This document shows positions 1,389 to 41,728 of a DNA stretch of 64,000 nucleotides, one piece after another; position 1 is the stretch's first letter, and every line of letters starts with the position of its first letter. This stretch comes from Macrostomum lignano (taxonomy: Eukaryota). The notes beneath the pieces are model-generated. The model did no database searches and was not told the DNA's origin. It saw only the letters and a program-made list of their open reading frames with translations. The translations under genes were made by a program, and so were the position numbers. Location of the stretch: assembly GCA_002269645.1 (NCBI GenBank), contig NIVC01000616.1, positions 372,001 through 436,000 on the forward strand, read 5' to 3'.

Positions 1389-2069
1389 CTTTTTTCTGCG
1401 ACCATGTGCTAAGCATTCTACTGCTTCTGCGTAGCAGTAGTAGTGTGCAAAAATGCGAGTACTTTTCTTGCTGAATTGATTAAAAAAAGTTTTAAAAATA
1501 CTGCAGATAAATCTGTTGATTCAAATGTAGAAGAAACAGTTCACTTTTTGAGCCGTTAAATGCTTTTGGTTTTCTAAAGTTTTTTTGGAAATGTTTTTAC
1601 TGTTGTTTTTTGTTTTTGCTTCTTTATCTCGGCATTTTATTTTCACTTGCCAATTTCCTACAGAATTTCCTACAGTCCAAATAAATTACGGCATTCACGA
1701 AAGCACGGAGATGGCCGGCTCGCAATTGAAATCGGCAGTTAAAAAGGCGACAGCGAAAGGCGCTCCTCGATCAAAAAGTCGAACGCCTGTCTGCCTCTGA
1801 ATAAATAGCTGAATAATATTTGTATTTATTATTTTTTACTTTTCATTTAGGAGCAAACGCACTCTTGTGATAAATAAAATACAAGCTGGATGGCTTAAAA
1901 CCGTTACTACTTGCTAGAGTCACAACTGGTTTGTTATGGCAGGGAAAAAGAATAAGGGAAATACTCGTAGACGAAAGTGCAGAACTGACTACTCTTCCTG
2001 CTTTTATCAGCAGGTGCTGAAATATTTCTGTACATTTTGAAGTACGTCACGGGGTTTGGGAGTCTTGTC

Positions 2070-3999: not shown

Positions 4000-13175
<9,176 letters not shown>

Positions 13176-19740: not shown

Positions 19741-20345
<605 letters not shown>

Positions 20346-21197: not shown

Positions 21198-22030
21198 ATG
21201 CAGTCAAACATCATCATCTGGATAAGTTTCCTCTGCGGTCTCGCAGCTCTTCTGGCTGTCGCAGCTGCGGAGGTGCCCAGGCCGGCTGTCCAGTTCACCG
21301 CGGCCAGGACGGGCAGCGCTGTCGCTCCGCCAGAGTTTCTATCGCAGCCCGGACTCAGCGAGCGCAGCTGCGGCTTCATGTGCAGCCACAAGCCGGGCTG
21401 CTTCGGCTTCTACTGGCTGCTCGGAGCGTGTCGGCTGTTCGACCTGCAGGCGTTTTACGATGCCAGCGCCTGGGTCAGCACCGGCAAGTGCGACGTCTTC
21501 GTGCTGGGTGCGTTTCTGGTGCTTTCGCTCACTTAGGTTCTTTTTTGTTAATATAACAACTGCTTCTGTAAACTCATTGATTGTATCTTATGAGTATAGA
21601 TACATTTATTGTCTCTCGATCAGATTTCAAGAAGCTGCCGGTTGCGGACTGCAGCCAGAGCTCAACCAGTCCGACATGGTTCTACCCATGCAACAGAGCC
21701 ATCGACGGTAACACGAGCCAGTCTCTGTGGTCCGACTCCTGCTCTCACACTCAGTTCAATGCTAGCGAGTGGTGGGAGGCCGGCTTCACAGCTCCGTCTC
21801 TCGTGTCCTTCGTCACCATCCACAACAGGCAGGACTGCTGCGCTGAGAGGCTCAACAAGTTCGACCTGCTTGTTGACGGGTCCGTGTGCAATCAGGTGAG
21901 GCTCAGCGCTCCGTTCTCCGTGGCCAACTTCACCTGCGGCGCTTTCGGCTCTCGGGTCCGAGTTGTGGCTCGCAGCGACCCGCCACAGGCTCTGACAATC
22001 TGCGAGTTCATGGCCTACGGCTTCTTCTGA
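21198..22030 (+). CDS. Secreted PAN/Apple + F-type (fucose-binding) lectin, FTL1; exons 21198..21507, 21624..22030
   Basis: Signal peptide; C-x3-C-x5-C-x2-F...C module; phase-1 GT..AG intron; F-type lectin domain with AIDGN, CSHT...WW, HNRQDCCAERL (H-x26-RxD-x4-R type motif) and terminal LTICEFMAYG. Confidence 0.85.
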
Positions 22031-22650
22031 TCGAGGAATTCGGAGAAATTCAATGTTGGATCACGGAATGCCCAGTGAAATACCATACTAATTAACAAGT
22101 GGGTTACAAAATAAACATCTAGATTCGAATGTCTGTGTCATAATCACCTGCTGCTATTTTCCAAGTTTTCTAAACGTTTTATCAAGAAGAAATTCAGAGA
22201 ATTCGATCTTCTTTTTCCCTTCTGCCACTTAATTTGACATCGGCTTTATGAGGCTGGTCAATCAAGTTCCATTTATTCAAACTCAGAAATATTGTAATGG
22301 GACATGGGTTATGAAGGATGTACATCTATAGTCAAACTCTCCTCAATACGACTACCAATAAACAACATTTGACTCTCCTGCTTTTTCTGAACGAATTTCA
22401 AGAAAGAAAAGTCAACTCGGCAGAAAATAAATAAGAAAAATCAATGACCAGCAAGTCCAGATCCTGATCAATGTTGCTGTCGGTCGAAACTGCAGCCAAA
22501 AAATTGTTTCTGGATTGCCAATTCATCTAAAAAAATTTTCTGTGTGCAGACACATAATTGTTGTTGGTATAGTCATGAGAATATAGATAAAAAACTGCTT
22601 CAAGTTTCAAAGGCCATACTGTCGGTTGCTGTGAATTGCAATCATTTCAT

Positions 22651-23439
22651 TCACGGGATTCCGTAGGCCTTAAACTCGCACATGCTCAGTGGCTGTGGCG
22701 GGTTCTGGCGAATCACAATTTTGATCCGCGAGCCAAAAGCACCGCAGGTGAAGTTGGCAACAGAGAAGGGCACAGTGAGGTTCACCTGGTTGCACACGGA
22801 CCCGTCTAAAAGCAAGTCAAATACGTTGAACCTCCATGGGCAGCAGTCCTGCCGGTTGTAAATGGTGACGTAAGACGCGACGGACGGAGCGGTCAGGACG
22901 GCCTCCCACCACGAGTTGGAATCGAGTTGCGTGTTGGCGCAGGACTCCCCCATCATTACAGCGCGAGTGTTGCCGTCGTAAGCCTTCTCGCAGCCTCTGG
23001 TGGCGCTTGTATTGCTCGACTGGGTGCAGCTGGCGATTGAAAGCTTTGAAACGGCTGAAATGAAGTGCGTTTTTGTAGCTTTTGTTTCGAAACGCTTGTT
23101 GACGTAAGATCGTGCCGAAAATAAGTTACAGTTACCTAGAACAAACACATCGCTTTTCTCCACGCTGACCCAGGAGCTGGTAGTGGAAAACGCCTGCAAG
23201 TTGAACAGCCGACACGCTCCGAGCAGCCAGTAGAAGCCGAAGCAGCCCAACCTCAGGCTGCACACGAAGCCACAGCTGATCAAGTTGGGTCCGGTCTGGG
23301 CCAGAAACTCCAACGGAGCAACAGCGCTGCCCGTTCTGGTCGCAACGGATTGCACAACCGGCCGGAGTGCCTCTGCTGCGGCTGCGCCCGTCCCGAAGAC
23401 GAAGACAGCTAAGAAGAAAATTGCTACAGTTGGCTGCAT
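22651..23439 (-). CDS. Secreted PAN/Apple + F-type lectin, FTL2; exons complement(23136..23439, 22651..23054)
   Basis: Paralog of FTL1 with the same intron position and phase. Signal MQPTVAIFFLAVFVFGTGAAAA; AYDGN, CANT, YNRQDCCPWRF. Confidence 0.85.
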   Translation of the reverse strand: MQPTVAIFFLAVFVFGTGAAAAEALRPVVQSVATRTGSAVAPLEFLAQTGPNLISCGFVCSLRLGCFGFYWLLGACRLFNLQAFSTTSSWVSVEKSDVFVLGNCNLFSARSYVNKRFETKATKTHFISAVSKLSIASCTQSSNTSATRGCEKAYDGNTRAVMMGESCANTQLDSNSWWEAVLTAPSVASYVTIYNRQDCCPWRFNVFDLLLDGSVCNQVNLTVPFSVANFTCGAFGSRIKIVIRQNPPQPLSMCEFKAYGIP

Positions 23440-24905
23440 TGTTTTGAGATTGGAGTTGCTGCAGAATTGCAAAATGAGTTCCATCTTTCGCGCGTTTCCT
23501 GCCAAGGCTCTTATTCCTGATTCTGAAGGCCTGGAAGGGTAGAAACGCCAGCCCAAGCAATTCAACAATGGGAAGGAGAAGCTTGAGAGCTGTCGCCAAA
23601 AGAATTTGCACACAGCAACACAAATGACAACCGATGAATGATTGAGATGCAAGCCATTGTCTTTTGATTGGCTTCCTAAGAGGCAAAAAGTTTAGATGAA
23701 AGATTTTGTGCCTAATTATAGCTGTCTTTTAATGTCACGTTGTCAAAAATGTTGTGACAATATGCCAAAAAGTGTTCGTGAAGTTGGTTCTTTTTCAAAC
23801 AATTGAACTGACTAATCAGTCAAATATTTTTTGTATCACCCTCGGCTCCCTTTCCCGAGCCCTGATCTATCAGTCTTGACAAACTTGGCAAATACATAGC
23901 TGGGATAAATGTCAGATGGAAGCGCACTTTATGGCAATCAAATTCTACTAGGAGAAGGCAAGCAGCAGCAATGTTAATGAATTGAATGCAATGCTCAATT
24001 GGAGATACTTGTGCCACATGTTACTACTGTATAAGTAATGTCAGACTTTAATTCTCTCAACTCACAAAACAGATGATCAATTAATGCAGAAACCTTCGGG
24101 ATAATCCGCGCTACCAAGTTTCTAAACATAATACATTTGTAGTAAAGTGATATAAAGTAGATACTTATATTCAACATCGAGCATCTGTTGATGTGGTGTA
24201 ACGAAGATCTGGGATGTCGCAACGTGGGTCCAGAGAAATCAAGGGGCTGAGCTTTGTAGCTCGGACAAACTGAATTCTTCAGTTCCCATACGGGCTGGCC
24301 GAGATTGTCGGACAGCCAAGTCTGAAGCGCAGAGAAGTTCGAGTCAGGACCGAGGTAGTTGAGTCTGTTGCCGAGTCAGGACAGACCGTCATAGTGAGGA
24401 ACCACTCGCCATTGGAGTCTGACTAAAACTGACTCCTCACATTTGATGTGCTTTCGACCTTGCTTTTAAAAAGCAAAGATTCAGAAAAAAATCTGTTTGC
24501 AGAGTTTTTTCCACTAAACAGGGAACACCATTCAGGTGAGCTCATTGCAGCGACAATGCCATTATTATTGATTCGGAGACTCTTTCAACCACAGTTTGCT
24601 GGCCTTCCTGACTGCAAGAAAGTTTATTCCAGCAAAGACGCAGGAAGCAGAGAAGCCATCGCGATATATAGCGGAGCCAAGCTTAGGTGAGTGAGTCAGG
24701 CCAGCCGCCCAAACAATGGTCTCAAATCATGAATAAAACTTCCTGGTTGTTGCATCCGCAACAACAGACTTGTCAATCAACAGTCGGTGTCTTTGCAGTG
24801 GCTTCCACGCTTTGTGTTAAAGCCATAAAAGATGAAAACAAGCAAGAAAGCAGTGTCAGCCAAGGTAGCTTTTGCTTTCATTCGGGCAGCGCAATGAAAA
24901 GAGAA

Positions 24906-25934
24906 ATGCAGTTGCAAAACTTCAACGCTCTCATGCTTCTACTGCTAGCTGCAGGTCACATTAGCGTCTGACGCAGCTTCCTCCGAGCGCAGGTGGTGGG
25001 CAAGCGACGAGAGCCTCTCCGATTACGAAGTTGTCAAATCGTTCTCGGTCCGGTCCAGAATTGAGTGCACAGCTGCTGCCAGCAGCGACTCCGCTGTGCA
25101 GCTGGTGGCGTTCAACGCCAGCTCCGGCCTGTGCGCTCACTTCAGGTGTCGCCTGGGCCTGAGCCACTGCAGGAAGTGCCGCAGTTTAAACAAGGCAGCT
25201 CCGCGTGGTTTATGGGTAAGAGAATGAATCAGCTCTTCGTTGTTTCTTCGAATGCCTTCATTTAGAATGCGTGACGTCTCCTTGCAGACAGCCGGCAGTG
25301 ACTGCTGGACCACCGTGCAGCACAGGGTGTCCGGCTCAGTGGACTTTTACCGCAACTGGACTCAGTACCAGAGCGAGTTCGGCGAGGGACCCGACGGAAA
25401 CTACTGGATCGGTGAGGACCAAAAAGTTGTGACCTATTAGAGCTATTGTAGAGACTAAAATATCTGCATGTTTAAATGCCTACTGCTAATGGCTTGGCAA
25501 TTGCTATTTCAGGTCTGAACGCTCTTCACGAAATCACGCAGCATGGAAGTCACAAGGTGCGGTTTCTCATGAAAGCCTGGAACGGGTCTGAGCACTGGGC
25601 TGAGTACTCCAGCTTCTCCGTGGGTCCCGAGTCCGACAACTACCGGCTGAGCGTGTCCGGCTTCTCCGGCAGCGCCGGCATCGGCGACTGCTTTTCTGCT
25701 CTAAACGGGCAGCAGTTCACCACAAAGGACGCCGATCACGACACTCACTCTGGTAACTGCGCAGTGATTTATCATGGAGCCTGGTGGTTCACCGCCTGCC
25801 ACTGCACGCACCCGAATGGGTATTACAGAGATGCCTCTGTTGCCACTGGAGATCCCTATGCTCAGGGTGTGATTTGGAGAATGTACTTCGGCTACTACTA
25901 CTCACTGATGGAGTTCGAGATGCTGGTTTTGTAA
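24906..25934 (+). CDS. Secreted degenerate-PAN + fibrinogen-related domain protein (FReD-A); exons 24906..25215, 25288..25411, 25513..25934; apparent extra G near 24948
   Basis: [65 protein letters not shown], terminal EMLVL. The signal peptide joins the mature region only with a 1-nt correction. Confidence 0.8.
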
Positions 25935-26169
25935 CAAGACGCTGGAATTACTATTGATTAATTGTCAAACTGCAATATTTAGATACTTAAGGGCATCCAA
26001 GATAGCGGAATGGATTGATTCACACTACCAGAGTCCAAATCTATCTCTTTGGAAAGATTTTACTAAACAAATTCCAACAAACTGAAAAACACTAATCTTG
26101 ATGAAAATACAAAGGTGACAAAAATATCATCAAATACTGTGAGCAAATGCAGTAATCGTTCTGCTCAAT

Positions 26170-26432
26170 TCTTTATTGATGTGCAACCGACAGCTCAACC
26201 GCAGCTATTGCGCGGCGAATCTCGTATGCCTGTTCAGTCCAAGGACTGGGGGTCGCCACTCCCCTCAAATAACATTTCAATACTGGCACCCATTTTACAG
26301 CTGCGTGAGCTGAAGCAATGCAGAGTTAAGTGTCTTGCTCAAGGACACAAATTCTTCAAGTGGGATCGGGAATCGAGCCCCCGACATTCAAATCGTGAGT
26401 CCGACGCTTTAACCACTAGGCTACAACCCCTC
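26170..26432 (-). mobile_element. tRNA-derived CORE-type SINE
   Basis: Reverse strand shows GGGTTGTAGCCTAGTGG (A box), a B-box-like segment, and TGTGTCCTTGAGCAAGACACTTAACTC...CTGTAAAATGGG resembling the MIR CORE domain. At least five copies in the window. Confidence 0.8.
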
Positions 26433-27180
26433 ACTAGGCTACAACCCTCACTAGGCTACAACCCTCACTAGGCCACAACCCTCACTAGGCTACAACCCCT
26501 CACTAGGCTACAACCCCTCACTAGGCTACAACCCCTCACTAGGCTACAACCCCTCACTAGGCTACAACCCCCACTAGGCTACAACCCCCACTAGGCTACA
26601 ACCCCCACTAGGCTACAACCCCTCACTAGGCTACAACCCCTCACTAGGCTACAACCTCCACTAGGCTACAACCCCTCACTAGGCTAAAACCCCCACTAGG
26701 CTACAACCCCCACTAGGCTACAACCCCCCACTAGGCTACAACCCTCACTAGGCTACAACCCTCACTAGGCTACAACCCCCACTAGGCTACAACCCCCACT
26801 AGGCTACAACCCCCCATCAGGCTACAACCCCCACTAGGCTACAACCCCCCACAAGGCTACAACCCCCCACAAGGCTACAACCCCCACTAGGCTACAACTC
26901 CCCACTAGGCTACAACCCCCCACTAGTCTACAACCCCCACTAGGCTACAACTCCCCGCTAGGCTACAACCCCCCACTAGTCTACAACCCCTCACTAGGCT
27001 ACAACCCCCCACTAGGCTACAACCCCCCACCAGGCTACAACCCCCACTAGGCTACAACCCCTCACTAGGCTACAACCCCCCACTAGGCTACAACCCCCAC
27101 CAGGCTACAACCCCCACTAGGCTACAACCCCCCACAAGGCTACAACCCCCCACAAGGCTACAACCCCCCACTAGGCTACT
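26416..27180. repeat. 16-18-bp minisatellite (CACTAGGCTACAACCCC), about 45 copies, derived from the SINE 5' end; followed by a second SINE head at about 27180..27295
   Basis: The unit is the reverse complement of the first ~17 nt of the adjacent SINE. Confidence 0.9.
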
Positions 27181-27439
27181 AGTGGTCCTTGGGACGGATA
27201 TTGTTCCGAGTGGTTCGAGAATCGAACCCCCCCCCTGACTCTCAAGTCGTGAGTCCCACGCTCTAACCACTAGACTACAACCCCCACTAGGCTGCAAACC
27301 AATAGGTTATGCTCAGATTATACCTACTACCTTAGGTATAAGTAGTACACTGCGAATTATCTGCAGCAAGCTGCCTTCAATGACGGTGAGTATAAAAGCA
27401 GGAAAGCTGAGCAACCTTCGCTAGCAGCAACAGTACCAA

Positions 27440-28473
27440 ATGTCCCTCAAGAACTCTGCTGTCATTGCCAGTGCAGTCGCTTGCACTCTGCTGGTCCTCG
27501 TATCCGGTGCGGTCGCTCAGTTCACCCGCATCGGCTGCTTCAAAGATGGCCGATCGAGGGATCTGAACGCAGCCTCCATCAGCAGCAGGGAGATGTCGTA
27601 CGAGTTTTGCAGCAGCTTCTGCTCTCAGAGGGGCTTGCCATTCTTTGGCGTGCAGTACAGGTCTTATTGCTTCTGCGGCTCTTCCTACGGGCGGTACGGT
27701 GTGGCCGCGGAGAGCGACTGCCGAGGCTCCTGCACTGGCAACCCTGCGCAGAGGTGCGGCGGCACCTGGCGGAACTCCGTGTTCGCTTTAGTCTACGGTC
27801 GTGAGTTCGATTTCGTTGTATACATTTTGACTGTATTTTTTAAAACCTATGGATTTGGTCCTTGACGACTCCTTAGGGGGTCGCTTTTCAAATTACAACC
27901 AAAACAACAAAATGCGTTGTCAGCCAGTCAAGCGAGTCTTGAGAGGCCAAGACAATGTCCACACAAGGGCCTGGGCGCGAACATTGGCCGCACCGCTGGC
28001 AGTGTCCGGGGCGCCGGCATCAGCCACCACGAAACGCCGAAATGGTCTCAAATTGCGAAGACTCAATTTTCACATTAGATTCGAATAAAACTCTATGAAA
28101 CAGACGTTCGCCGGTTTGGAATTTAGAAATTGTACAGTGATCCCTATTACGTGCAAACAAGTATATACTTCAGGTTTCTTGTATACAAAAAATTCTGCCT
28201 ACTGCAAACTTCATATCTGAATAACTCCCTGCTTCAGGCAGCAACTACTTCACTCCGACGCAGCGACCCGGCCCAGCCGTCCCAACTACTGGTTCATCGC
28301 TCTGTACACAAGCTGCCAGATCGGCTGTTGACTGCCTCCTGCTGTGTGCGGCCGAATCCGGTTGCCAGGCTGTAATTTTCCAATCGCACCAGCGACTCTG
28401 CCACCGGCTTAAGTCCGCCTACACTCCTGTCAGCCTGACTGGCATCCCCGGAGACTATTTCATCCGCAACTGA
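27440..28473 (+). CDS. Secreted WSC + PAN/Apple protein (WSC-A); exons 27440..27800, 28238..28473
   Basis: Signal peptide; WSC domain (IGCFKD..RDL..MSYEFCSSFC..FGVQY..CFCG..DC..CTGN..CGGTWRNSVF). The phase-1 GT..AG intron joins an exon encoding SAVDCLLLCAAESGCQAVIFQSHQRLC...DYFIRN*. Confidence 0.85.
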
Positions 28474-28738
28474 GCTCTGGAGAGCGCGATCGAATTACAC
28501 TTGCGAGTAGGAAATACTCACCAAAATCAAACAGGTCTTGTCTTGACGCGTCTCTTTTAGGAAGTGAGGAAGTGAGGAATGGAAATTATATTTATTTACT
28601 GTTCAACCATTCCTATCCAGCTATAGATTACAAGCGCATAATCCAATGATCCGCATTCGTGAAATTCATTTGAACATTGTTGAACGCTATTTAGCTCGTA
28701 AAAACGAATAAATACGATACGTCTATCTAAGAACCTTA

Positions 28739-29010
28739 GGGGTTGCAGCCTAGTGGTCAGAGCATCGGACTTACGACTTGAAGGTCGGGGGTTCGATTAC
28801 CGATCCCACTGGAACAACTTGTGTTCTTGAGCAAAAGACACTTGACTCTGCATTGCTTCAGTTCACCCAGCTGTAAAATGGGTGCCAGCATTAGCTGGGG
28901 TAATTGAGGGTCCTTGGACTGAACAGCCGTACGCAGCCTTCAGATGCGCCACGCAATAGCTGCGGCTGGGCTGTCGGTTCCAATCGAGTATTATTATTTA
29001 TTATTATTAT
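28739..29010 (+). mobile_element. tRNA-derived CORE-type SINE with (TTA)n tail
   Basis: A box CAGCCTAGTGG, B box GGTTCGATTAC, CORE segment, ATT-repeat tail. Confidence 0.8.
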
Positions 29011-29789
29011 CTAAGAAATACACGATTCCATCATCGAATAAGTTGTGCCCACCTAAGGAATGTTTCCACAGAATTACGTGCAACTACCTAAAAAAATATT
29101 GACACAGAAGCCCTCAGCCGCTCTAGAATAACTTTGAGTATAGGCATCAACAGAAAAATTTGGCTGTGGGCACTGTTGCTTAGGGGATCAACACACAGTT
29201 TTTTCTCCCATTTGCCTTGAATCAACAAATCGTCAACAGATTTATTGACATTCGTTGGGGTCGTTATCCAAGTTTCTTTTTCCACAGCTTCGCATTCTGC
29301 ACTGTATATGCACAAGATCTATAGAATAATGGCTCGTGTGACTTAGCCATTGTGGCATTAAGCTCCAGACAATGCCTGGAAACAATTGCTTTGTTGACAC
29401 TGTTAAGCAATCTTGAGATCAACTATACGCTAACGCGATTCGGATAACTTTTCACCCGTCAGGTACTCAGGTTTGCTTGTTTCCAAGCTGATGCGACTGC
29501 TTTTTTCAATGTGAAAAGCGCCAAATCATTATTGCACAGCCAGTGAAAGCAGGGGGTACAACAAGGATCACTTCGAAGGCAGTTCAGTAAGTTGCTCAAG
29601 GAACTTACACGTAACTACCAAACTACCGACCAAGGTTTGCCTGGCGACTTGATTCTTGTTTGAGAAGGTGCGCCACGAAAACGAAGCCACTTTTAAAATT
29701 ACACCGATCGAAAATTCAAGATTGAGTTCTTTCAGCATTACAGGTAAAGACATCAATAATTCATTTTTCTGAACTCAAATCATATTTCA

Positions 29790-30111
29790 TGAATAATAAT
29801 ACTAATAAATAATTAATTGATTACACCTGTCCCAATTGGGCCAGATGTGCAACCGACAGCTCAGCCGCAACTATTTGCGCGGCGCATCTGAAGGCTGCGT
29901 ACGGCTGTTCAGTTCAAGGACTGCGGGGGTCGCCACACACACCCTGAATTACCCCAGATAATGCTGGCACCCATTTTACAGCTGGGTGAACTGAAGCAAT
30001 GCAGAGTCAAGTGTCTTGCTCATGGACACAAATTGTCCCAGTGGGATCGAGAATCGAACCCCCAACCTACAAGTCGTGAGTCCGACGCTCTAACCACTAG
30101 GCTGCAACCCC
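29790..30111 (-). mobile_element. tRNA-derived CORE-type SINE
   Basis: Reverse-complement homolog of the copy at 28739. Confidence 0.8.
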
Positions 30112-30404
30112 GTTTTGTCTTTAATGCTTCGATTAGATCAGATTATCAACAATGCTGCAACTACAATTGTTAATTTTTTCGTTTCATTGTTCATTTTTTT
30201 TCATTTTTGACCTCTACAAAGGGACAGAACGGTGTAAGTTAAATAGCTTTTGAGTAAAAGAGACGCCAGTGCGGCTGAGCTGTCGGTTGCACATCTGGCC
30301 CAATTGGGACAGGTGTAATCAATTAATTATTTATTAGTATTATTATTCATGAAATATGGTTTTGCAAGGAAAAATTCACCTTATTACTTTATAAAGAAAT
30401 TTTT

Positions 30405-31525
30405 TTCGGGAGAGAAGGAAGGCATGGGGAAGATGGGAGAGAGGGAAGGAAAGAATGGGGAAGATGGGAGAGAGAGAAGGAAAGCATGGGGAAGATGGGA
30501 GAGAGGGAAGGAAAGAATGGGGAAGATGGGAGAGAGAGAAGGAAAGCATGGGGAAGATGGGAGAGAGGGAAGAAAAGAATGGGGAGGATGGGATGGAAGA
30601 GAAAAAAAGGAAAGAGTGGGGAAGACGGGAGAGAGAGAAGGAAAGCATGGGGAAGATGTGTCGAGAAAAAATACTAAATTAAAGACTAGAGAGTTACTTG
30701 GAGTTAAATTGAATCTAAGATAAGCCAGTAAGTGGGCGCAGGGCCCAAACAAGTATATTTATACCAGACATTAACTTAGGGGGTTTGAATTGCAGATAAT
30801 AAAGAGAGGGGGTGGAGTGCACGACTAAATAGAGAGGCGAGAATGGAGAACCAATCAGAAGGCAGCAAGGGAGAGAGAGATAAGAATAACAAGATTGAGC
30901 TAGACACAGAGAGAGAGAAAACAGTAAACAGAGACAAGTGAAGGTGAACTAAAGAAATGACTAGGAAAGTCGCGACAAGATGGGAGAGAGGGAAGGAAAG
31001 AATGGGGAGGATGGGAGAGAAAAAAAGGAAAGAGTGGGTAAAACAGGAGAGAGAGAAGGAAAGCATGGGGAAGATGGGAGAGAGGGAAGGAAAGCATGGG
31101 GAGGATGGGAGAGAGGGAAGGAAAGAATGGGGAGGATGGGAGAGAGAGAAGGAAAGCATGGGGAAGATGGGAGAGAGGGAAGAAAAGAATGGGGAGGATG
31201 GGAGAGAGAGAAGGAAAGCATGGGGAGGATGGGAGAGAGGGAAGGAAAGCATGGGGAGGATGGGAGAGAGAGAAGGAAAGCATGGGGAAGATGGGAGAGA
31301 GGGAAGGAAAGAATGGGGAGGATTGGGAGAGAAAAAAGGAAGAGTGGGGAAGACGGGAGAGAGAGAAGGAAAGCATGGGGAAGATGGGAGAGAGGGAAGA
31401 AAAGAATGGGGAGGATGGGAGAAAGAGAAGGAAAGCATGGGGAAGATGGGAGAGAGGGAAGAAAAGAATGGGGAGGATGGGAGAGAGAGAAGGAAAGCAT
31501 CGGGAAGATGGGAGAGAGAGAAGGA
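30405..31525. repeat. About 31-bp purine-only repeat (GGGAGAGAGGGAAGGAAAGCATGGGGAAGAT) in two blocks, ~30405..30660 and ~30975..31525
   Basis: Direct reading. Confidence 0.9.
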
Positions 31526-31599
31526 AAGAATCGCACGAGAAGAGCCAGCGCACTCTCATGAGGAGGGAAATGCTAAAATGCTGTGGCTCTCAGCATGGT

Positions 31600-34500
31600 A
31601 AGGGTTCAAGATAGAATCGCCCTGTCAAACATCAAACACTCATGGGGGAATTGCTGAGATATCATGGCTTATGTTTGGAATCTCTGAAATTCTGTAGCTT
31701 ATAGGGGCTGCTGAAATGCCAAAGGTCAATTGGGAGTTCTTAATGATCTGAGAGAGAGTCTTCGAATGCAGCCTCGCTCTGCATGCAGTGGGCTGCAGTC
31801 AGCTTCACGGCCCATCTTCACCGCCTCTGAGAGAGGCATCACTATTGAAAGCAAGAGCTATTTGGTTGTCATGGAGACCGCAGCTACTGAATAATTCAGA
31901 TTCGGGGCTGATATATTGGGCTCGCATAATTGCTTGTATTGGGTGACTGCGGACTAATTCTGAAAATTCTGAGAGATCACGGAACAGTCAGTTCAACTGG
32001 TGAGTCTGTTGAGCATGAAGCATGAGCTGGGATTCCGTCCCCTCCCTCCACCCTCTCCTTCTGCCCTCGCCCTCCTCCCTCCGCCCTCGCCCTCCTCCAT
32101 CCGCCTTTTCCCTCCTCCCTCCGCCCTCGCCCTCCTCCCTCTCCCTCCTCCCTCCGCCCTCTCCTTTCTCCCTCCGCCCTCGCCCTCCTGGGCGTCGTCG
32201 GCGCCATCGCTGTGGATGCGGTCACGATCGCGTGCCAGAGCTTCATAGGTGCGGCTTTTCAGCCTAGGCTTGGTGTTTCGCAGGGCTACCTGCACCGCAG
32301 GGACGCTCGGGTCAAGTCTGAGCACTCGTTCCCTTAGGCGTGCCGCCCTCTCGGACGCGATAAAAGAAAGTGGTGCAAGCCCGGCCAGTTGTAGAACGGA
32401 ACGGGCGTTGGTTGGCATGATGCAGCCCGTGATCAGCCTCGCACACGCGTTCTGTTGCTGCTCAATGCCTCGCCTAATGGAGGGGGCGGCGCCGCACAAC
32501 CAGGTGCCTGCGGCGTACTCGGCCACAGCACGGATGCTGCTGATGTAGGCTGTTCGGATAGTATGTAAGTCTACATCTCCTGGGAGATGTCGGCGATGAG
32601 CTCCTCCGTGGAGCGCCCCCGTCGGAAGCCCGCCTGGCTGACGGTCAGCCGACCGGAGGCTTCCAGAGCGTAACGGAGGCGCTGGAGGACCAAACGTTCT
32701 GCGAGCTTTGCCACGCAGCTGGTGAGGGTGAGTGGACGATAGGATTCTGGCTTGCTGGCGTCCTTCCCTTTCTTGGGAATCGGGATGATGGTAGCCTTCC
32801 TCCATTGCCACGGGCACTTGCCTTCCAGCCAGGACCGATTAATGAGCTCGAGGATTCTCTTGTCTGTGGACGGCGGTAGATGCTTCAACATGTCATTACT
32901 AACGCCGTCCTGACCGGGGGCCTTCCCGGATTTCAGAGCCCGGACGGCGCTCCGGTACTCCGTAGGGTTGAAAGGTTGACAGATTCCCTGGCGTTTGCCG
33001 GTTTTGCAGCAGTGAGCGCACCGCTTCATGGGCCTTTTTGTTGATCGACCTGTCTTCTGGACGGTTTGGCACTCTGGAGACCGCACTATAGATCTGGCAA
33101 AACAGGTTTGCTTTTTCCAATTTAGTTCGCGCCGGTCTGCTGGGCGCGGTGCCACCCGTCTGGTGCCTGGTAATTGATGTGCTGCTAGCGGGGGTGCGCC
33201 CTTCCCCCTCTCATGTTCTTCAGCAGGCGGAAAAGGTCGCTGTTAACGTCCAGCTGAGCTGCCTTCTCGTTCCAGGATTTAGTCTTTTGCCTTCGGATGG
33301 TGGACCTGACTCGATTTCTGGCCGATTTGAAGGCTGCAATGTTGGAGTCTGACAGCTCAGCTTCAGCCGTCCGGCGCGCCTCTTTGCAAGCCCTAGAGGC
33401 TTTCTCGCAGTCTTCGGTCCAGAAAAGTTTGGCCCTCGGGAGTGTCCCTTTAGGGATGTTGTAGCTCGCCGCCTTCAGGATATCGCTACAAATGAGGGCG
33501 TGAACTTGTTCGGTCGCTACACCGCCCGTCGGGTATCGCTCCCTTTCGGCATCGATTTCGGCGAGCTCCTGTTTAAAGCCGTTCCAATCCGCCTTTCGAT
33601 AGCTCCATTTACCAGTCCGGGGGCGACGCTGCTTGGTAGTTCGCTTGCGGATGGAGCTAAGCTGGAACGTGATGGGGAGATGGTCAGAGCTCATGTCGCT
33701 CTGGGTCGTCCAACTATCCGCGACGCTTCTCAACAGATTACTACTGGTCCAGGTGATGTCCGGCGATGATAGAGCGCCTGTCCCCGGGTTCGTGCGGGTG
33801 TGGCGTTCACCGTTTGCGAGTTTCAGGTTCCTCGCGTTGGCCCAAGCTTCCACCCTGCGGCCCCTGTCGTCTTCATCTTGGTGGCTGTCCCAACTCCAGT
33901 GGGCGTTAAAGTCGCCCCCGAAAATGATACCCTGGGCGTCCGGTATGAGGTTTAGCGGAGGGTGCTAGGTCTCGCCTCTCTGTTCGCTGGTTGGTGGTGC
34001 GTAGACTGAGACCAGTGTGATGGGCTTCGAGTCCTTAAGGTGAACGGTGGCTGCCGTGACGTCCAGCATGCCGCGCTCCGCGTCACTTGGCGGCGGTTTG
34101 CTGTCGACGGTTATGTCCGAGCGGGTGAAAATCATCGCCCGGGTTGGTCGGGTATTTCGGGTCTTTCGGGTCTGGAGGTGGCGGCGGTGGCGAGAGCGGC
34201 TCCGGGGGAGGCGTTGGTGGGGATGGCGGTCGGTCCGGGGGTGTACAAGAGTTACACTGTTCCACTTTGAAGGCGCTAATCCACCTGTTGCTGCGACCCA
34301 GGCCGCTACATGACAGGTGACACCAGTCGCTGCAAACGTTGCAGCGGACCGAGCACTGCCGTCCTTTAATTTGGTTGCCGCACTTACAGCACCACCCAGG
34401 TTGTTTGCTTGGAGGATGCTGGGCCAGTCGCTCGTGCTGTCATCGTCGGTACCACTGCTGTAGCAGGCGCCGGCGCTGTCGCTGCCGTGGATGCGGGTGC

Positions 34501-34950
34501 TTGGATTTTTGCGTCTGCTGTTGCTGTTGCTGTGCTGTCCGCCTGGTTCGGGCCCGGCGCTGTCCAGGGCTCGTTCCTGCGGACGCAACCGGTGCGACCC
34601 GATTTGCATCCGGGGCACCATTCGGTGCGGTCCTCCGGCCAGCGCTTCCGGCATCGCGGTCTGGTGAGGCGGCGTCCGCCACATCTTGTCCACGGTGTCG
34701 GACAGGTGTTCGGGCTAGCGCTGCTTCCGGGCGATCTCTCGGCTAGCTCGGGGCCCCGCTGGGCGGCGTCCTTATGGAGGCCGTCGCACCTAGTGGCCAC
34801 GCAGTAGCCGTCCGGTGGGTTAAAGGGTTGATCCGCCCGAAGCTTCGTCTCTTGAAGCAGGATAGCCGTGGGTTGGTTGGTCTGGAGCCACTTGGCCAGC
34901 TTGGTGAGACGAGCCCGAAGGCCGTTGCAATTGAAGGCCGTTGCAATCGC
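31600..34950 (-). mobile_element. Defective I-group/Ingi-like LINE (LINE-A): disrupted APE, RT with core deleted, decayed 3' end
   Basis: APE motifs FNCNGL, LQETKL, VSVYAPP, GDFNAH, SPDIT, SDHLPI. RT N-terminus KAPGQDG, WRKATIIPIPKKGK, SYRPLTLTSCVAKLAER, QAGFRRGRST joins directly to the post-RT NACARLITG region. Frameshifts and stops present. Confidence 0.9.
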
Positions 34951-36352
34951 TCTTTCTTTCTTTCTTTCTACCCGGCTCGCCGTTAGCACTGCGGTGCTAA
35001 GATAGGCGGGGGCCAGCGCCCCATGCTGCGAAGGAATGTGAAAATGCGACCGTGTCGGTACTCCAGCGGGTCGTCGCTGCCGAAAAAACGGAGGCGGGCG
35101 GCGTCCCCGCGAGGGCAGTGGTAGATGAGGTGCTCAACGGTATCAGAAGCGCCGCAATCGGGGCAGGCGTCAGCTTCCTGGAGGCCGATGCGGGCGCGAG
35201 TGGCGGCGCAGAGCGTGCTGACGCCAGCTCGGAGCTGATTCATGGCGACGAGCTCCGCCCTGCTGCGGCCTGGGTCGGTCGGATGAAGAGGGGGGCCCAG
35301 GACCTGGGCGTCCAGGGCGCGACGGTCGCGGCGGATGGCGGCGCGCGCTGTCTGGAGGCTGATGGCGGCCGTATCTTTTGGTAGCATGGCAGCTTCGGCG
35401 GCGGCGGTGTCAGCTGCGTCGTTGCCGGCTATTCCCGCATGGCCTGGCACCCAAATGAAGGTAACGGAGGCGCTGCTGTTGGCCAGGAGGTGCCAGCAGG
35501 CGTCGCCGGTGGCGGTGGTTTGCCAGAGCGGGCCGCTTTCGAGGGCCGTCAGAGCGCTCAGGCTGTCGGTGGCAACCGCGACCGAGCGGGGCGGTGCAGG
35601 TTGGTCCGCGAGGAAGTGTTCCAGCGCTGCATGGATGCCAACCAGCTCAGCCTGGAAGCTGCTGCAGAGCCTGCCGGCCGGCCTGCGGATGACGGTGGTG
35701 GTGTCACCGGCATAGATCACAGCCGCTACGCCGCCGTTCTCGGTTCCGCCGGCGGCCGACCCATCGGTCCAGGCGATGGCGTCATAGTCGGCAACTCTGG
35801 CGAGGCCGGCGGCCGCGGCTTCGGCCCTGGCCGCAGCATGGGCGGAACGGTGAACGCGTGTCGCGGCGAGGTCGAAGATCGTAGGGCCCCCGTCGTGGGG
35901 TCTCCAGGGGGCGGGTCTGGGCAGGTTTTCCCTGCCAAAGCGCTGCAGGGTGGTGCAGATGGGCAGCTCGGCGGCGGCGCGGCGCCAGCACCCTCGGAAC
36001 TCGCGAGAGCGGTCGAGGTCGCGGCGGTCGTCAAGGGCCTCGCCTCCCGCTAGGGCCGGGTCGAACCTTCGATTCTTAAGCCGTGGTCGTGTTGGCCGCA
36101 TTGCCGTGGTGAAGGCCGGGCAGTCCGACGGCAGCCTGGTGATGCGCTCGAAAAGGGATGCGGCTCGCTCGATGGCGAAATTGCCCACGGGCGGCAGGTT
36201 CGCCAGCCGGAGTGTCCGGTGGTTGGGGGTGGTGCTACAGCAGCCGGTGATGAGGCGCGCGCAGATGGTTTGCTGTTGTTCAATGGTACGCCTGGTGCTC
36301 GGCGCCGCACAGGTTAGCCAAATGGCGCCACCGTAATCAGCGCACCCCCGGA
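34951..36352 (-). mobile_element. 5'-truncated LINE (LINE-B) with open C-terminal ORF, RNase H, CCHC knuckle and (GAAA)n tail
   Basis: ICARLITG; RNase H AWTDGS, SSFQAELVGI, ATDSLSAL, WVPGHAGIAGNDAAD; CPDC..TVEHLIYHCP. Tail at about 34952..34969. Confidence 0.9.
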
Positions 36353-36376
36353 GCTTTTGGTGAGTGGTGAGTGGCT

Positions 36377-37408
36377 ATGAGGTTGTAATCGCTCTGCTGC
36401 TGCTGCTGCTGCTGGCTGCAGTGCTGCATCATGTGACTGAATCCGCCGCCAACTCCGGGCAGCTGTGGCAGTCGAGCCGCGAGAGCCTCTCCGACTACGA
36501 GGCCGTGAGGTCGCTGCCATCCCAAAGCGAGTCCTCGTGCGCGGTGCGTGCCAACATCGACACCGCTGTGCACCTGATGCCGTTCAACGCCAGCTCCGGC
36601 CTGTGCGCTCACTTCAGGTGTCGCCTGGGCCTGAGCCACTGCAGGAAGTGCCGCAATGCGAACAAGGGATTTCAGCGAGTGCGGGTGAGTTCCTCAGTTA
36701 GATATGTCAGCGTTAATGCAAAGTAGAAAAACTGGCACACCTGTTGTGTCACCTTGCAGACAGCCGGCAGTGACTGCTGGACCACCGTGCAGCACAGGGT
36801 GTCCGGCTCAGTGGACTTTTACCGCAACTGGACTCAGTACCAGAGCGAGTTCGGCGAGGGACCCGACGGAAACTACTGGATCGGTGAGGACCAAAAAGTT
36901 GTGACCTATTAGAGCTATTGTACAGACTAAAATATCTGCATGTTCAAATGCTCAATGCTAATGGCTTGGCAATTGCTATTTCAGGTCTGAACGCTCTTCA
37001 CGAAATCACGCAGCATGGAAGTCACAAGGTGCGGTTTCTCATGAAAGCCTGGAACGGGTCTGAGCACTGGGCTGAATACTCCAGCTTCTCCGTGGGTCCC
37101 GAGTCCGACAACTACCGGCTGAGCGTTTCCGGCTTCTCCGGCAGCGCCGGCATCGGCGACTGCTTTTCTGCTCTAAACGGGCAGCAGTTCACCACAAAGG
37201 ACGCCGATCACGACACTCACTCTGGTAACTGCGCAGTGATTTATCACGGAGCCTGGTGGTTCACCGCCTGCCACTGCACGCACCCGAATGGGGAGTACAG
37301 AGATGCCTCTAAGGCCACTGGAGATCCCTATGCTCAGGGTGTCATTTGGAGCTTGTACTTCGGCTACTACTATACTCACTGAAGGAGTTCGAGATGCTGG
37401 TTTTGTAA
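36377..37408 (+). pseudogene. FReD-B, probable pseudogene paralog of FReD-A; exons ~36377..36684, 36760..36883, 36985..37408
   Basis: Exons 2-3 are nearly identical to FReD-A. ATG AGG TTG TAA is out of frame with the signal peptide, a second frameshift (TACTACTATACTCAC) removes the terminal strand, and LINE-B abuts the start. Confidence 0.7.
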
Positions 37409-37647
37409 CAAGACGCTGGAATAACTATTGATTAATTGTCAAACTGCAATATTTAGATACTTAAGGGCATCCAAGATAGCGGAATGAATTGATTTACACT
37501 ACCAGAGTCCAAATCTATCTCTTTGGAAAGATTTTTCTAAACAAATTCCAACAAACTGAAAAACACTAATCTTGATGAAAATACAAAGGTGACAAAAATA
37601 TCATCAAATACTGTGAGCAAATGCAGTAATCGTTCTGCTCAATTCTT

Positions 37648-37905
37648 TATTGATGTGCAATCGACAGCTCAACCGCAGCTATTGCGCGGCGAATCTCGTA
37701 TGCCTGTTCAGTCCAAGGACTGAGGGTCGCCACTCCCCTCAAATAACATGTCAATACTGGCACCCATTTTACAGCTGCGTGAGCTGAAGCAATGCAGAGT
37801 TAAGTGTCTTGCTCAAGGACACAAGTTCTTTAAGTGGGATCGGGAATCGAGCCCCCGACATTCAAGTCTTGAGTCCGACGCTTTAACCACTAGGCTACAA
37901 CCCCC
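37648..37905 (-). mobile_element. CORE-type SINE (duplicate of the 26170 copy)
   Basis: Nearly identical to 26170..26432, in the same flanking context. Confidence 0.8.
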
Positions 37906-38230
37906 ACTAGGCTACAACCCCACTAGGCTACAACCCCCATTAGGCTACAACCCCTCACTAGGCTACAACCCCTCACTAGGCTACAACCCCCACTGGGCTA
38001 CAACCCCCACTAGTCTACAACCCCCACTGGGCTACAACCCCCACTAGGCTACAACCCCCACTGGGCTACAACCCCCACTAGGCTACAACCCACACTAGGC
38101 TACAACCCCCACTGGGCTACAACCCCCACTAGGCTACAACCCCCACTAGGCTACAACCCCCACTAGGCTACAACCCCCACTAGGCTACAACCCCCTACTA
38201 GTCTACAACTCCGCACTAGGCTACAACCTA
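37888..38230. repeat. SINE-head-derived 16-17-bp minisatellite, about 20 copies
   Basis: Same unit as 26416..27180. Confidence 0.9.
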
Positions 38231-38355
38231 TAGTTTATGCTCAGGTTTGCTACTATAAGTAGTACAACCAGAAGTGTCTGCAACAATGTGCCTTTAGTTG
38301 TGGTGAGTATAAAGCAGGTAGCTGAGCAGCCTTCGCCAACAGCAAAAGGTACCAA

Positions 38356-38645
38356 ATGTCCCGCAAGAACTCTGCTATCATTGCCCGTACAGTCGCCGGT
38401 GCGGTGCGGTCACTCAGTTCGCCTGCTTCGGCTGCTCCAAAAAGATCAGCAGCAGGGAGATGTCGCACAAGTTTTGCAGCAGCTTCTGCTCTCAGAGGGG
38501 CTCGCCATGCTTCGGCGTGCAGTACAGGTCTGATTGCTTCTGCGGCTCTTCCTGTGGGCGAAAGCCGATGAGGCGCCTGCACTGGCAACTCTGCGCAGAG
38601 GCGCGCTGCCTGGCGGAACTCCGTGTTTGCTTTAGTCTAGGGTCG
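38356..38645 (+). pseudogene. WSC-B pseudogene (decayed copy of WSC-A exon 1)
   Basis: Aligns to 27440..27800 with several deletions and frameshifts; no PAN exon found downstream. Confidence 0.8.
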
Positions 38646-39387
38646 TGAGTTCGATTTCACTTTCTGCATTTTTGACTGTATTTTTCATAACCGTTCGGAT
38701 TTGGTCCCGTGACGACTCCTTGGGGGTTGCGAATCGAAGTCAATGAAAGGGTCATTGTTTTTGGAATCACTTCGGAAGCCTTCCAGGCCGTCAAGATATT
38801 CAACTACAGCTGTAGCTCGTATTCTCCGAGGTGGACTGTTTCCATAGGCGTTCTTTTTGACATCTACAAAGGTACAGAACTGTTTAAGGTTTTGAGTAAA
38901 AGTGAGCAGCAGTTCAGATCGAGCGGGCGTCAAAGGTCAATTAAAGTACTGTGTGAAATTACATATATTGTTATTATAAGATTATTGACATATCGTATTG
39001 TTAGGCGTATTATGAATTACACTCGGCTTCTAAGTTGCTTTTCGTGTTTTGGCCATAGACATCCAAGGTGTAAAAGATCCGGCTTCATTGGAGGCAAGGA
39101 GTTCTACAATTAGCTATCTGGAGCGGAAGCGAGTTTTACCTCATTAGGCCACGCCAATTGTAAAGAAAAAGGAGCCAGCACTGAATGTCTATGGCTCTGT
39201 CTGACTCTGTCTATGCTAGTCTGGCTTCATGAGGTAAAATTGAAAAACTCGTTTCCACTCCAGATTGCTAATTATAGAACTTCTTGATTGAAGGACTTAA
39301 AAATCACCTCAACAATGATATAATAGTAGTGGATTCCGTCCTGCATAGCGCACTAATCATTCTATTACTAAGCAATGCCAAGGTGAT

Positions 39388-39885
39388 ATGCAGCAGCAGC
39401 AGCAGCAGGACGGCGTCAGGCGCCCCTGGGGCATGCTGGAGCCGCGCAATCTCTGTCCTCGAATATTCCCCGACTTTGTGTTCGAGCTCTACGACTCCGT
39501 GTACCGAATCGGCAGCGACCGCGAGAACGACCTCATGTTGGTTGAGGACACGCGGGTGTGCCGCTACCACGGCTTCATCTTCCTGCACCGGGACGACTCC
39601 GGGACCACCATGTGGTACTACGATCACAGCATCTCGGGCACCCTGGTGAACTCGTACAGGGTGCACAGCAGGTGGTACAACTTGTTGTACGGCGACTACA
39701 TCCACATCGGCTGGACGGCTGGCGAGGACTCCTCAAAGTACACCACTCTGAGGATTTTCGGGCCCTACCCGCTGCCGCAGCATCCCAGAGCGGTGCGACT
39801 GCGCCAGCCTAACATCGACATCCAGATGTCGCCGCCGCTGTTTGCGCTGTACATGAAGGAGCTGGAGAATGAGAATAGAAAGTGA
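39388..39885 (+). CDS. Intronless stand-alone FHA-domain protein with degenerate phosphothreonine site
   Basis: YRIGSDRENDLML.D.RVCRYH...DHSISGTLVN...LLYGDYIHIG follows FHA spacing; GC-rich coding-like sequence. Confidence 0.75.
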   Translation: MQQQQQQDGVRRPWGMLEPRNLCPRIFPDFVFELYDSVYRIGSDRENDLMLVEDTRVCRYHGFIFLHRDDSGTTMWYYDHSISGTLVNSYRVHSRWYNLLYGDYIHIGWTAGEDSSKYTTLRIFGPYPLPQHPRAVRLRQPNIDIQMSPPLFALYMKELENENRK

Positions 39886-40779
39886 TGGCCCGCCTGCGGC
39901 CCCAGCTTCATTTACTAAACATAGTTGCTTTGGTCTCGTTTGATAAAAAGCTCTCTGCACATGACTTTTAAGCCATAAAATCTACTCAGCAACTCAGTTG
40001 CCTGTTGCTGTGACTTCAGCTGTAGTTTCCAGGCAGTATGGAATTTGCTGAAGTGTGCTTGCAGTCTGACGGGCTCAGAAATATTAAGGTTTAATGCTGA
40101 TAATATATGCCCCAGCAAGCTCGTTTCTGGAGATGGCATTCGATGAGTGATCATCTGAGAAGATAATTGCGACGTCCTAAGACAGATGAAAACATTAAGC
40201 AGGTTCCAGATTTTCTAATTAAATTACCCTAAAAGAACTTGGAAGACAAACTGGAACCATGCAGACATGCAGCCGGACTGTGGATCTCTGTGGATACTTA
40301 TGGATCTCTGATTTGTTGTTAATTTAATTATTTTTGTTGGATCAGGTTTTAATAGGCCTTCGATGCTCTGAGAGTCGCGCTGATGCTGCATTGCTACATG
40401 TATTTTCCACTGTTCTCTCACTGACTAAACAATATTGGACACAAAATTACTAACAGAATTCTGAAATTTACTATCAATGATTTTCAGAGAAGAAAAAACT
40501 TTTCTTCCTGTGCCCACGAGCTTCCAACGCCTGATGCAGTCAGTCAGAAACTGCGTGTGAGTTTGGCTGGAGTCGCGCTTGAAGGCACGCGAACACCAAG
40601 GTTTAAGCAAACGCTTTTTTAGCAGTCAGTTTGGGTTCACAATGCATAGCGAATGTCACGAAATGTCGTTGGAAAAAAAACGCAAAAAGTTTTATTTAAA
40701 AGCGCTGCATAGCTCGCAGCTGGAAATCGAAGACTGGAAGCAGCTCGACAGACTGCATCAGATTTTGCATTCATAAAGC

Positions 40780-41728
40780 ATGCCGATTTCCTTTCCGGTT
40801 TGTGTGCTCGCGCTCTGTGGCTCAGTGTCTCTGCTGGTTGCCTCTGCTGAAGTGCTCACCAAGTCTGATCGATTCGATCGAGTCAACAAGAGCAGCGCCA
40901 TCGCTCCGCCGGAGTTTCTCGTGCAGCCCAGACCGAACAAGATCAGCTGTGGTTTCCTGTGCAGCCGCAGGCCGGGCTGCTTCGGCTTCTACTGGCTGCT
41001 CGGAGCGTGTCGGCTGTTCGACCTGCAGGCGTTCCTCAATGCCAGCGCCTGGGTCAGCACCGGCTCGTGCGATGTCTACGTGCTGGGTAAATTTAGACGA
41101 GATGTTGCAACTCTGACATTTATTGCTTATCTTCACAAATTCCTCTGCATTTATCTGTTCTCACAGCTTTCATAATTTCAGACATCAAAAAGCTGAAGTT
41201 TTTGAACTGCAGCCAGAGCTCCAACTACTATGCGGACAGGTATCTTTGCGACCGAGCATTCGATGGCGACGCCAGATCCAGCAGCTCGAATGACATGTGC
41301 ACCCACACAAAGTCCAGTGCTAACGAGTGGTGGGAGGCCGGCCTGGCTGTTCCATCGTTTGTGTCCTTCGTCACCATCCACAACAGGCAGGACTGCTGCG
41401 CTGAGAGGCTCAACAAGTTCGACCTGCTTGTTGACGGGTCCGTGTGCAACCAGGTGAGGCTCTTGACTTAGCTGCAGGGGGCGTCCGGCGGATGCAGCGA
41501 GGAGGCGGAGGAGACCGCCCATTCCGCTAGCCCCTGGCGACCAACGACTTCCGTTGAAGTGGTGTCGCTCAGGGGGACCCGTCGGTCTCGCAGGTGAGGC
41601 TCAGCGCTCCGTTCTCCGTGGCCAACTTCACCTGCGGCGCTTTCGGCTCTCGGGTTCGAGTTGTGGCTCGCAGCGACCCGCCACAGGCTCTGACAATCTG
41701 CGAGTTCATCGCGTTTGGGTTCTACTGA
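40780..41728 (+). CDS. Secreted PAN/Apple + F-type lectin, FTL3; exons 40780..41086, 41182..41453, 41594..41728 if the new 140-nt intron is spliced
   Basis: Paralog of FTL1 with long near-identical stretches. CTHT..HNRQDCCAERL intact. Interrupted by the insertion at 41463..41590. Confidence 0.75.
41463..41590. mobile_element. 128-bp insertion with 12-bp target-site duplication (possibly a short 5'-truncated retroelement in reverse orientation)
   Basis: CAGGTGAGGCTC at 41451..41462 and 41591..41602; FTL1 has a single copy and no insert at the equivalent site (near 21893). Confidence 0.85.

Follow-up and report, generated by a model that had tools for sequence, protein, structure and literature searches.

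We analysed a 64-kb window of the Macrostomum lignano genome (64,000 nucleotides of contig NIVC01000616.1, assembly GCA_002269645.1, positions 372,001 to 436,000 of the forward strand, with coordinates counted here from its first letter), in which an earlier reading of the letters, referred to below as the original prediction, had proposed a cluster of small secreted proteins that pair a PAN/Apple unit with one of three glycan-recognition domains. Gene models that we built from open reading frames (ORFs), paralogue alignments and GT-AG splice sites reproduce this inventory: within 20 kb lie three genes joining a PAN module to an F-type lectin domain (FTL_A, FTL_B and FTL_C), two fibrinogen-related domain genes with an N-terminal module of ~80 amino acids (aa) (FReD_A and FReD_B) and one intact gene joining a WSC domain to a PAN module (WSC_A). 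A second, decayed WSC+PAN gene had also been proposed; the decay is there, as indels and a stop in WSC_B, but the PAN part is not, since WSC_B is without any PAN exon. The limits given for the cluster, 21198 and 41728, coincide exactly with the start of FTL_A and the stop of FTL_C. Domain matches and gene models thus agree with the description of a co-located modular cluster combining a PAN-type unit with an F-type, FReD or WSC domain, and this cluster is real, bounded and partly decayed. Its members are laid out as follows.

21198-21507 / 21624-22030, plus strand: FTL_A, two exons encoding 238 aa in a GT-AG model
21198-21507, plus strand: FTL_A exon 1, signal peptide (21198-21269) and PAN/Apple module, ending in phase 1 at a GT donor
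21624-22030, plus strand: FTL_A exon 2, F-type lectin domain with a complete His...RxDxxxxR fucose-site motif
22651-23439, minus strand: FTL_B, exons 23439-23136 / 23054-22651, 235 aa, PAN and F-type lectin
24894-25934, plus strand: FReD_A, exons ~24949-25215 / 25288-25411 / 25513-25934, leader ATG at 24894 out of frame
24949-25215 and 25288-25411 + 25513-25934, plus strand: parts of FReD_A, the PAN-like N-module within the former and subdomains B and P in the latter two
27440-27800 / 28238-28473, plus strand: WSC_A, 198 aa
27440-27800, plus strand: WSC_A exon 1, signal peptide and WSC domain with 8 Cys
28238-28473, plus strand: WSC_A exon 2, PAN/Apple module with the canonical four-Cys core C0, C4, C10 and C22
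36364-37382, plus strand: FReD_B, exons 36364-36684 / 36760-36883 / 36985-37382, without an in-frame ATG
38254-38727, plus strand: WSC_B, pseudogene remnant matching WSC_A exon 1 and its flank
40780-41728, plus strand: FTL_C, exons 40780-41086 / 41182-41453 / 41594-41728, 237 aa, PAN and F-type lectin
41454-41593, plus strand: insertion of 140 nucleotides (nt), GT...AG, within the FTL_C lectin exon

Introns separate the domains at every boundary, in phase 1 in the FTLs and WSC_A and in phase 0 in the FReDs, and the module is N-terminal in the F-type lectin and FReD genes, where it shares an exon with the signal peptide, and C-terminal in WSC_A. By tblastn, no further copies of the six module types were found elsewhere in the 64-kb window. 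The three lectin-type domains that had been named are all present with strong matches to Pfam and to solved structures. The FTL lectin exons match Pfam F5_F8_type_C_2 at 2e-11 and the F-type lectin structures of striped bass FBP32 (3CQO, 5.5e-20), eel agglutinin (1K12, 7.4e-10) and Streptococcus FTLDs; WSC_A matches Pfam WSC at 1.6e-18 over profile positions 2-82 of 82, with eight Cys; and the FReDs match Fibrinogen_C at 4.4e-43, over profile positions 40-208 of 221 only. Signal peptides, originally ascribed to all members, were found in FTL_A, FTL_B, FTL_C and WSC_A, which have leaders made of Met, a hydrophobic stretch and AxA, but not in FReD_A and FReD_B, whose starts are defective.

Alignment of FTL_A superimposes its fucose-site His and Arg-x-Asp-x4-Arg, with both Arg aligned, on the motif of 1K12 and 3CQO, and FTL_C carries the same His and Arg-x-Asp-x4-Arg motif. 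FTL_B, the reading frame of which is otherwise open, differs at two positions: the fucose-site His is changed to Asn, and the fifth cysteine of the module, C40, is gone (Lys-Ser-Asp vs Lys-Cys-Asp); its sugar specificity may have been changed or lost. The insertion in FTL_C is absent from FTL_A and FTL_B, begins GTGAGG, ends CGCAG and is bordered by duplicated CAGGTGAGGCTC. Removing it by splicing restores the paralogous frame exactly and retaining it gives an early TAG, so that an intact FTL_C requires excision of 41454-41593 as an intron. The insertion, which was found only once in the window, looks like either a very young intron gained via insertion with a target-site duplication or a disabling insertion. 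Among the FTL paralogues, the ratio of nonsynonymous to synonymous substitution rates (dN/dS) is 0.39-0.75, a range that points to weak purifying selection, as is typical for secreted proteins that evolve fast. The closest relatives of the FTLs are all Macrostomum lignano proteins, with up to 65% identity, and the PAN-bearing relatives recovered by protein search belong to M. lignano throughout.

The cysteine spacings originally quoted for these proteins proved exact when read from the translations: the WSC_A module has C0, C4, C10, F15, L21 and C22, the FTL modules have Cys at C0, C4, C10 and C20, to which FTL_A adds C40, and the FReD_A and FReD_B modules have C0, A4, V10, F15, L21 and C22. 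In isolation, the WSC_A module passes the Pfam cut-off for PAN_1 (24.5 bits, E = 2.5e-5, against a cut-off of 21.4) and matches PAN_4 at 1.6e-3, and within the full protein its PAN_1 score is 21.2 bits; these profile matches clearly identify it as a PAN, as had been proposed. For the FTL modules, the same assignment succeeds at the level of the family and not for the copies in the window. Across eight family members, six match PAN_3 and four match PAN_1 (best 4.2e-4), paralogue P0002 exceeds the PAN_1 cut-off with 25.3 bits, and UniProt labels both P0002 and P0003 Apple-domain proteins. The window's own copies give only weak matches in the Pfam scan (KIAA0319_N 0.04, PAN_3 0.1). The best PDB match of the FTL family profile is the Apple domain of Eimeria MIC5 (1HKY, E = 0.18, four cysteines aligned), and on a PAN from the snail Pomacea this profile scores 20.1 bits compared to a maximum of 9.0 bits on 1400 shuffled decoys. 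Collectively, these matches constitute good evidence that the FTL N-modules are PAN domains at family level.

The FReD proteins differ in that their matches begin at Pfam position 40 and, in alignments to ficolin-2, at ficolin-2 residue 44. Subdomain A is therefore absent as judged by alignment, and a PAN-like module is found in its place. C0 and C22 are the only cysteines of this module, and because at least 90% of family members have Ala at position 4, loss of the inner disulfide appears to be old and family-wide. An AlphaFold2 model built from a 17-sequence alignment has a predicted local distance difference test (pLDDT) score of 85-90 over residues 21-60, with the order strand-helix-strand-strand, and when the model was compared with the PDB by Foldseek the top 36 matches were nearly all PAN/Apple domains, at probabilities of up to 1.0. 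These include plasminogen, HGF NK1, Toxoplasma MIC4, Sarcocystis SML-2, Eimeria MIC5, prekallikrein and a Colletotrichum oxidase, with the factor XI Apple domain a few ranks below the top 36; no fibrinogen chain was among the PDB matches. In addition, the FReD family profile scores 11.1 bits on the WSC_A PAN, above all 1400 shuffled decoys, in a gapless alignment that sets C0 on C0 and C22 on C22 and places C4 and C10 of the WSC_A module on the FReD Ala and Val, and tblastn pairs the two modules at E = 0.021, a sequence link that we regard as weak. From the predicted fold, a divergent PAN without the inner (C4-C10) disulfide is the most likely identity of the FReD N-module. The original prediction had described it in just these terms, a description that is consistent with the AlphaFold core, the Foldseek matches and the WSC_A register but finds no support in Pfam or in PDB sequence profiles. 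Profile-profile comparison of the FTL and FReD modules was rejected as proof of homology (hhalign probability 0.2%); with more divergent members included, the PAN register scored best (P = 0.039, probability 1.3%).

When the FReD N-module profile was run against 1.84 billion representative proteins, it returned 18 matches, comprising 16 FReD proteins and 2 spurious repeat proteins. All of the FReD proteins with a source name come from M. lignano, to which relatives of the module thus appear restricted. The closest relatives of the full FReDs are likewise from M. lignano, with up to 93% identity, and one UniProt fragment contains peptides identical to FReD_A. The locus would thereby reveal a large FReD family, of roughly 40 paralogues, that has gone unannotated in Macrostomum, with relatives recognisable by sequence coming from M. 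lignano wherever a source is named. For WSC_A, a word-indexed protein search found no M. lignano relative; its sole match was a WSC protein from a Pararhodobacter metagenome (46% identity over the WSC domain), which sits in an ordinary metabolic neighbourhood that has no bearing on the present locus.

A further element of the original prediction, that the module is shared between the families and shuffled among them, found no support when the module profiles were compared. The FTL profile that scores 20.1 bits on the snail PAN gives only 9.6 bits on the PAN of neighbouring WSC_A and does not detect the FReD module, suggesting that each PAN type is at least as distant from the other two as from a snail PAN. 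Since they are not mutual nearest relatives, any common origin would be ancient rather than a product of local exchange; the introns at domain boundaries fit recombination at the level of exons, but again of an ancient kind, and within this locus we found no signs of module exchange. Duplication, by contrast, has left clear traces in two further features.

25276-26760 vs 36748-38228: segmental duplicate with 96.3% identity, from FReD intron 1 through the 3' flank
31996-36374, minus strand: non-LTR (long terminal repeat) retrotransposon fragments (RNase H, endonuclease and the start of a reverse transcriptase) lying between the two FReD+WSC units

Exon 1 of FReD_A and FReD_B shares 59% amino-acid identity with a synonymous divergence (dS) of 0.48, compared to a dS of 0.04 for exons 2-3, and the exons of the WSC copies are 83% identical compared to 96.3% for the duplicated segment. 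Because FReD exon 1 and the WSC exons are far more diverged than that segment, later gene conversion is probable: FReD and WSC were duplicated as one unit, with the segment probably homogenised thereafter. WSC_B matches exon 1 of WSC_A and the adjoining flank at 82-83% identity, carries several indels and one stop, and loses homology to WSC_A within the intron, after which no PAN exon follows. The leader ATG of FReD_A at 24894 is in a different frame from the rest of the gene and meets a stop, and in FReD_B a hydrophobic leader is present but an in-frame ATG is missing; its first codons are overlapped for ~10 nt by an RNase H ORF of retrotransposon origin that lies on the other strand and reaches up to 36374. 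The defects of the FReDs and WSC_B may reflect real decay or long-read indel errors in the assembly; counted over all seven units, two or three have defects. The order of the retrotransposon pieces (RNase H 36374-34986, endonuclease 33964-33188 and reverse transcriptase start 33242-32574, all on the minus strand) fits no single element, and a UniProt model from M. lignano, P0029, has RNase H fused to a FReD.

The reading that we favour, with a probability of roughly 0.6, is that this locus represents a cluster, specific to the Macrostomum lineage, of genes for small, secreted lectins of two modules, which combine PAN or PAN-like modules with F-type, FReD or WSC domains and have multiplied by tandem and segmental duplication. 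We propose that three unrelated sugar-binding domains have each been joined, with an intron at the boundary, to one module of the PAN/Apple fold, which in the FReD family would be a divergent PAN-like version, never with the inner C4-C10 disulfide, that takes the place of subdomain A. Each protein would be a soluble extracellular glycan binder, secreted as the leaders in the translations suggest, that owes one specificity to its lectin domain; by analogy with fish fucolectins the ligand of FTL_A and FTL_C could be fucose, and ficolins suggest acetylated sugars for the FReDs. The PAN module might then provide either another site for ligand or a surface for self-association, and the resulting molecule could cross-link glycans or agglutinate them, whether these belong to mucus, to microbes or to gametes and seminal fluid, an activity for which fish fucolectins, ficolins and the Apple lectins SML-2 and MIC4 serve as our analogues. 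Such a cluster would be turning over, with FReD and WSC duplicated as a unit that retrotransposon fragments then split, followed by decay of one WSC copy, with damage to both FReD starts in this assembly and loss of a sugar-site residue in FTL_B. A more ambitious version, in which the putative PAN and PAN-like modules are assembly handles that build mixed oligomers of fucose-, acetyl-sugar- and WSC-type binders from a co-regulated cluster, and in which the FReD module replaces subdomain A as the oligomerisation element, strikes us as highly improbable. Hetero-oligomerisation, raised as a possibility in the original prediction, stays speculative.

Several observations weigh against the favoured reading. 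By themselves, the FTL copies of the window remain below Pfam cut-offs, and the AlphaFold model of the FTL module (8 sequences) is poor, with a mean pLDDT of 51 and non-significant Foldseek matches among which apicomplexan Apple lectin structures are listed, so that the PAN call for these modules rests on sequence evidence. FReD_A, FReD_B and WSC_B are possibly dead, barring assembly-error indels, and part of what had been called a toolkit may thus be non-functional. PAN models match none of the 17 FReD N-module members in Pfam at E up to 10, and this module has no sequence-profile match in the PDB; its Foldseek matches have weak E-values (0.04 for the best, and none as low as 0.001), with query-normalised template modelling (TM) scores of 0.41-0.45 that we infer are lowered by disorder in ~30 of its 81 residues. 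These last results feed an alternative in which only the FTL and WSC proteins contain a PAN and the FReD N-module is a lineage novelty or a remodelled fibrinogen subdomain A with a PAN-like Cys spacing that arose by chance. The module lies exactly where subdomain A would be, subdomain A likewise has one disulfide, and hhalign gives a probability of only 0.2-1.3% against the FTL PAN profile; yet the confident core of the FReD model has the PAN order of strands and helix, Foldseek retrieves PAN/Apple domains and zero fibrinogen chains despite the hundreds in the PDB, the WSC_A PAN beats 1400 decoys on the FReD profile without gaps and with Cys on Cys, and the best hhalign register between FTL and FReD is the PAN register. 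We consider a non-PAN origin of the FReD module unlikely.

The proximity of the genes could lack functional meaning, with three fast-evolving secreted families, several of their copies pseudogenes, having expanded independently in a repeat-rich, duplication-prone region without co-regulation or interaction. The window is crowded with minisatellites, SINE-like (short interspersed element) repeats and retrotransposon fragments, WSC_B is dead and both FReD starts are defective, and across the three families the PAN modules are not most closely related to one another. Moreover, fused UniProt models from other M. lignano loci contain tandem FReDs beside a DNA-polymerase zinc finger or a solute symporter, or tandem PAN-FTL pairs, and none of these models, a weak proxy for synteny, mixes the three families. 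With FReD-only and FTL-only arrays beside unrelated genes elsewhere, a general linkage of the three families is unsupported. Against this stand the joint copying of FReD and WSC as one unit and our unquantified judgement that three PAN-type families inside 20 kb, between unrelated flanks, would be unlikely if random; mere coincidence of position is doubtful, though it has a real chance of being correct. The proteins might also be reproductive, secreted into prostate or seminal fluid or associated with eggs, rather than immune or mucus lectins, with sexual selection driving their turnover. In M. lignano, RNA815_80.4, with two WSC domains, is a prostate-specific seminal-fluid candidate (PMC4490696), and Mlig-pro46 and others with WSCD2 homology are prostate or seminal-fluid candidates (PMC6953679), which makes a reproductive role a live alternative to one in immunity or mucus. 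The fairly high dN/dS of 0.4-0.75 and the lineage restriction of these lectin families fit such a role as well, but nothing ties the genes of this locus to M. lignano prostate transcripts, and WSC_A itself has no relative from this species in the protein search. Invertebrate F-type lectins and FReDs are mostly immune lectins, which also weighs against a reproductive function, and we judge that function rather unlikely for this cluster.

Compared with known systems, the FReDs are closest in layout to molluscan proteins that combine PAN/Apple and FReD, such as Biomphalaria FREP1/Bg179 and some Lottia FReDs (PMC7588048) and, in our protein search, the Pomacea ficolin-like proteins P0042-P0044 (PF00024+PF01683+PF00147). 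Both groups are secreted proteins with an N-terminal PAN/Apple-type and a C-terminal fibrinogen-related domain; however, the molluscan proteins have a canonical four-Cys PAN that Pfam detects, a complete FReD and extra modules (EB, IgSF), whereas the flatworm proteins, of ~260 aa, have a PAN-like unit that lacks the inner disulfide, is invisible to Pfam and replaces subdomain A. FTL_A and FTL_C share their F-type fold and fucose motif with the Anguilla agglutinin 1K12, FBP32 3CQO and Streptococcus FTLDs, but these fish and bacterial lectins have single or tandem lectin domains without PAN, and FTL_B differs from them in lacking the His. In the protein searches made here, the PAN+FTL pairing occurs in M. 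lignano proteins only, and our literature search found neither a published description of this pairing nor an account dedicated to these families in Macrostomum. Like WSC_A, the fungal copper-radical alcohol oxidases (Colletotrichum graminicola, 6RYV/6RYX) hold PAN_1 and WSC in one secreted protein, in that case as an N-terminal PAN_1 and WSC on a large catalytic domain, whereas the animal protein consists of WSC and PAN only in 198 aa; 6RYV also ranks high among the structures that match the FReD N-module by fold. The apicomplexan Apple lectins (Sarcocystis SML-2, Toxoplasma MIC4 and Eimeria MIC5) are small PAN/Apple modules that themselves bind galactose-type sugars, and their structures recur in our searches, with 1HKY the top sequence match and 2YIL, 2LL3 and 4A5V among the top fold matches. 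Unlike the two-module flatworm proteins they consist of PAN repeats only, and the likeness is drawn at the level of whole-module matches.

Since PAN+FReD is already known from molluscs and PAN+WSC from fungal oxidases, the cluster is a solid annotation result and not a surprise. Distinctive here are the minimal two-module format, the joining of PAN to an F-type lectin and the disulfide-reduced PAN-like unit in place of subdomain A. Recombination of lectin domains with small adaptor modules is a way in which invertebrates diversify their proteins for innate recognition and reproduction, and this locus presents three such lectin-adaptor combinations together in a regenerating model flatworm, the most notable being a FReD lectin in which a PAN-like fold that escapes sequence models appears to stand in for subdomain A. 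Should the PAN modules turn out to bind sugars or to mediate assembly, the locus would offer a compact system for studying how bivalent lectins arise and turn over.

The surroundings of the cluster are eukaryotic in character, with short GT-AG introns and many minisatellites, and its flanks are unrelated to lectins. Upstream lies a cullin on the minus strand, with a Pfam match at 11.7-13.2 kb and cullin-like ORFs continuing down to ~4.5 kb, and downstream are a SHIPPO-repeat ORF at 43.6-44.4 kb and a tyrosine phosphatase at 60-62 kb. One further ORF, unrelated to the neighbouring lectin genes, is found between the WSC_B remnant and FTL_C.

39388-39885, plus strand: FHA-domain ORF, 165 aa, intronless, Pfam match at 1.6e-6

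A SINE-like repeat of ~250 nt occurs in five copies that are 82-90% identical and lie in both orientations (26178-26430, 28739-28985, 29844-30111, 37652-37904 and 59090-59305); its translation reads '...KCLAQGH...ESDALTTRLQP', and several copies flank FReD and WSC genes. Minisatellite arrays of short to medium units are unusually dense in the window (2064-2952, 5078-6451, 8881-10352, 10957-11656, 19742-20329, 26413-27179, 30410-31530, 37887-38228, 46311-47935 and 53834-55255). One of ~590 bp, in a near-perfect 6-nt register, sits directly upstream of the cluster, and an array of 17-18-nt units follows each FReD copy on its 3' side.

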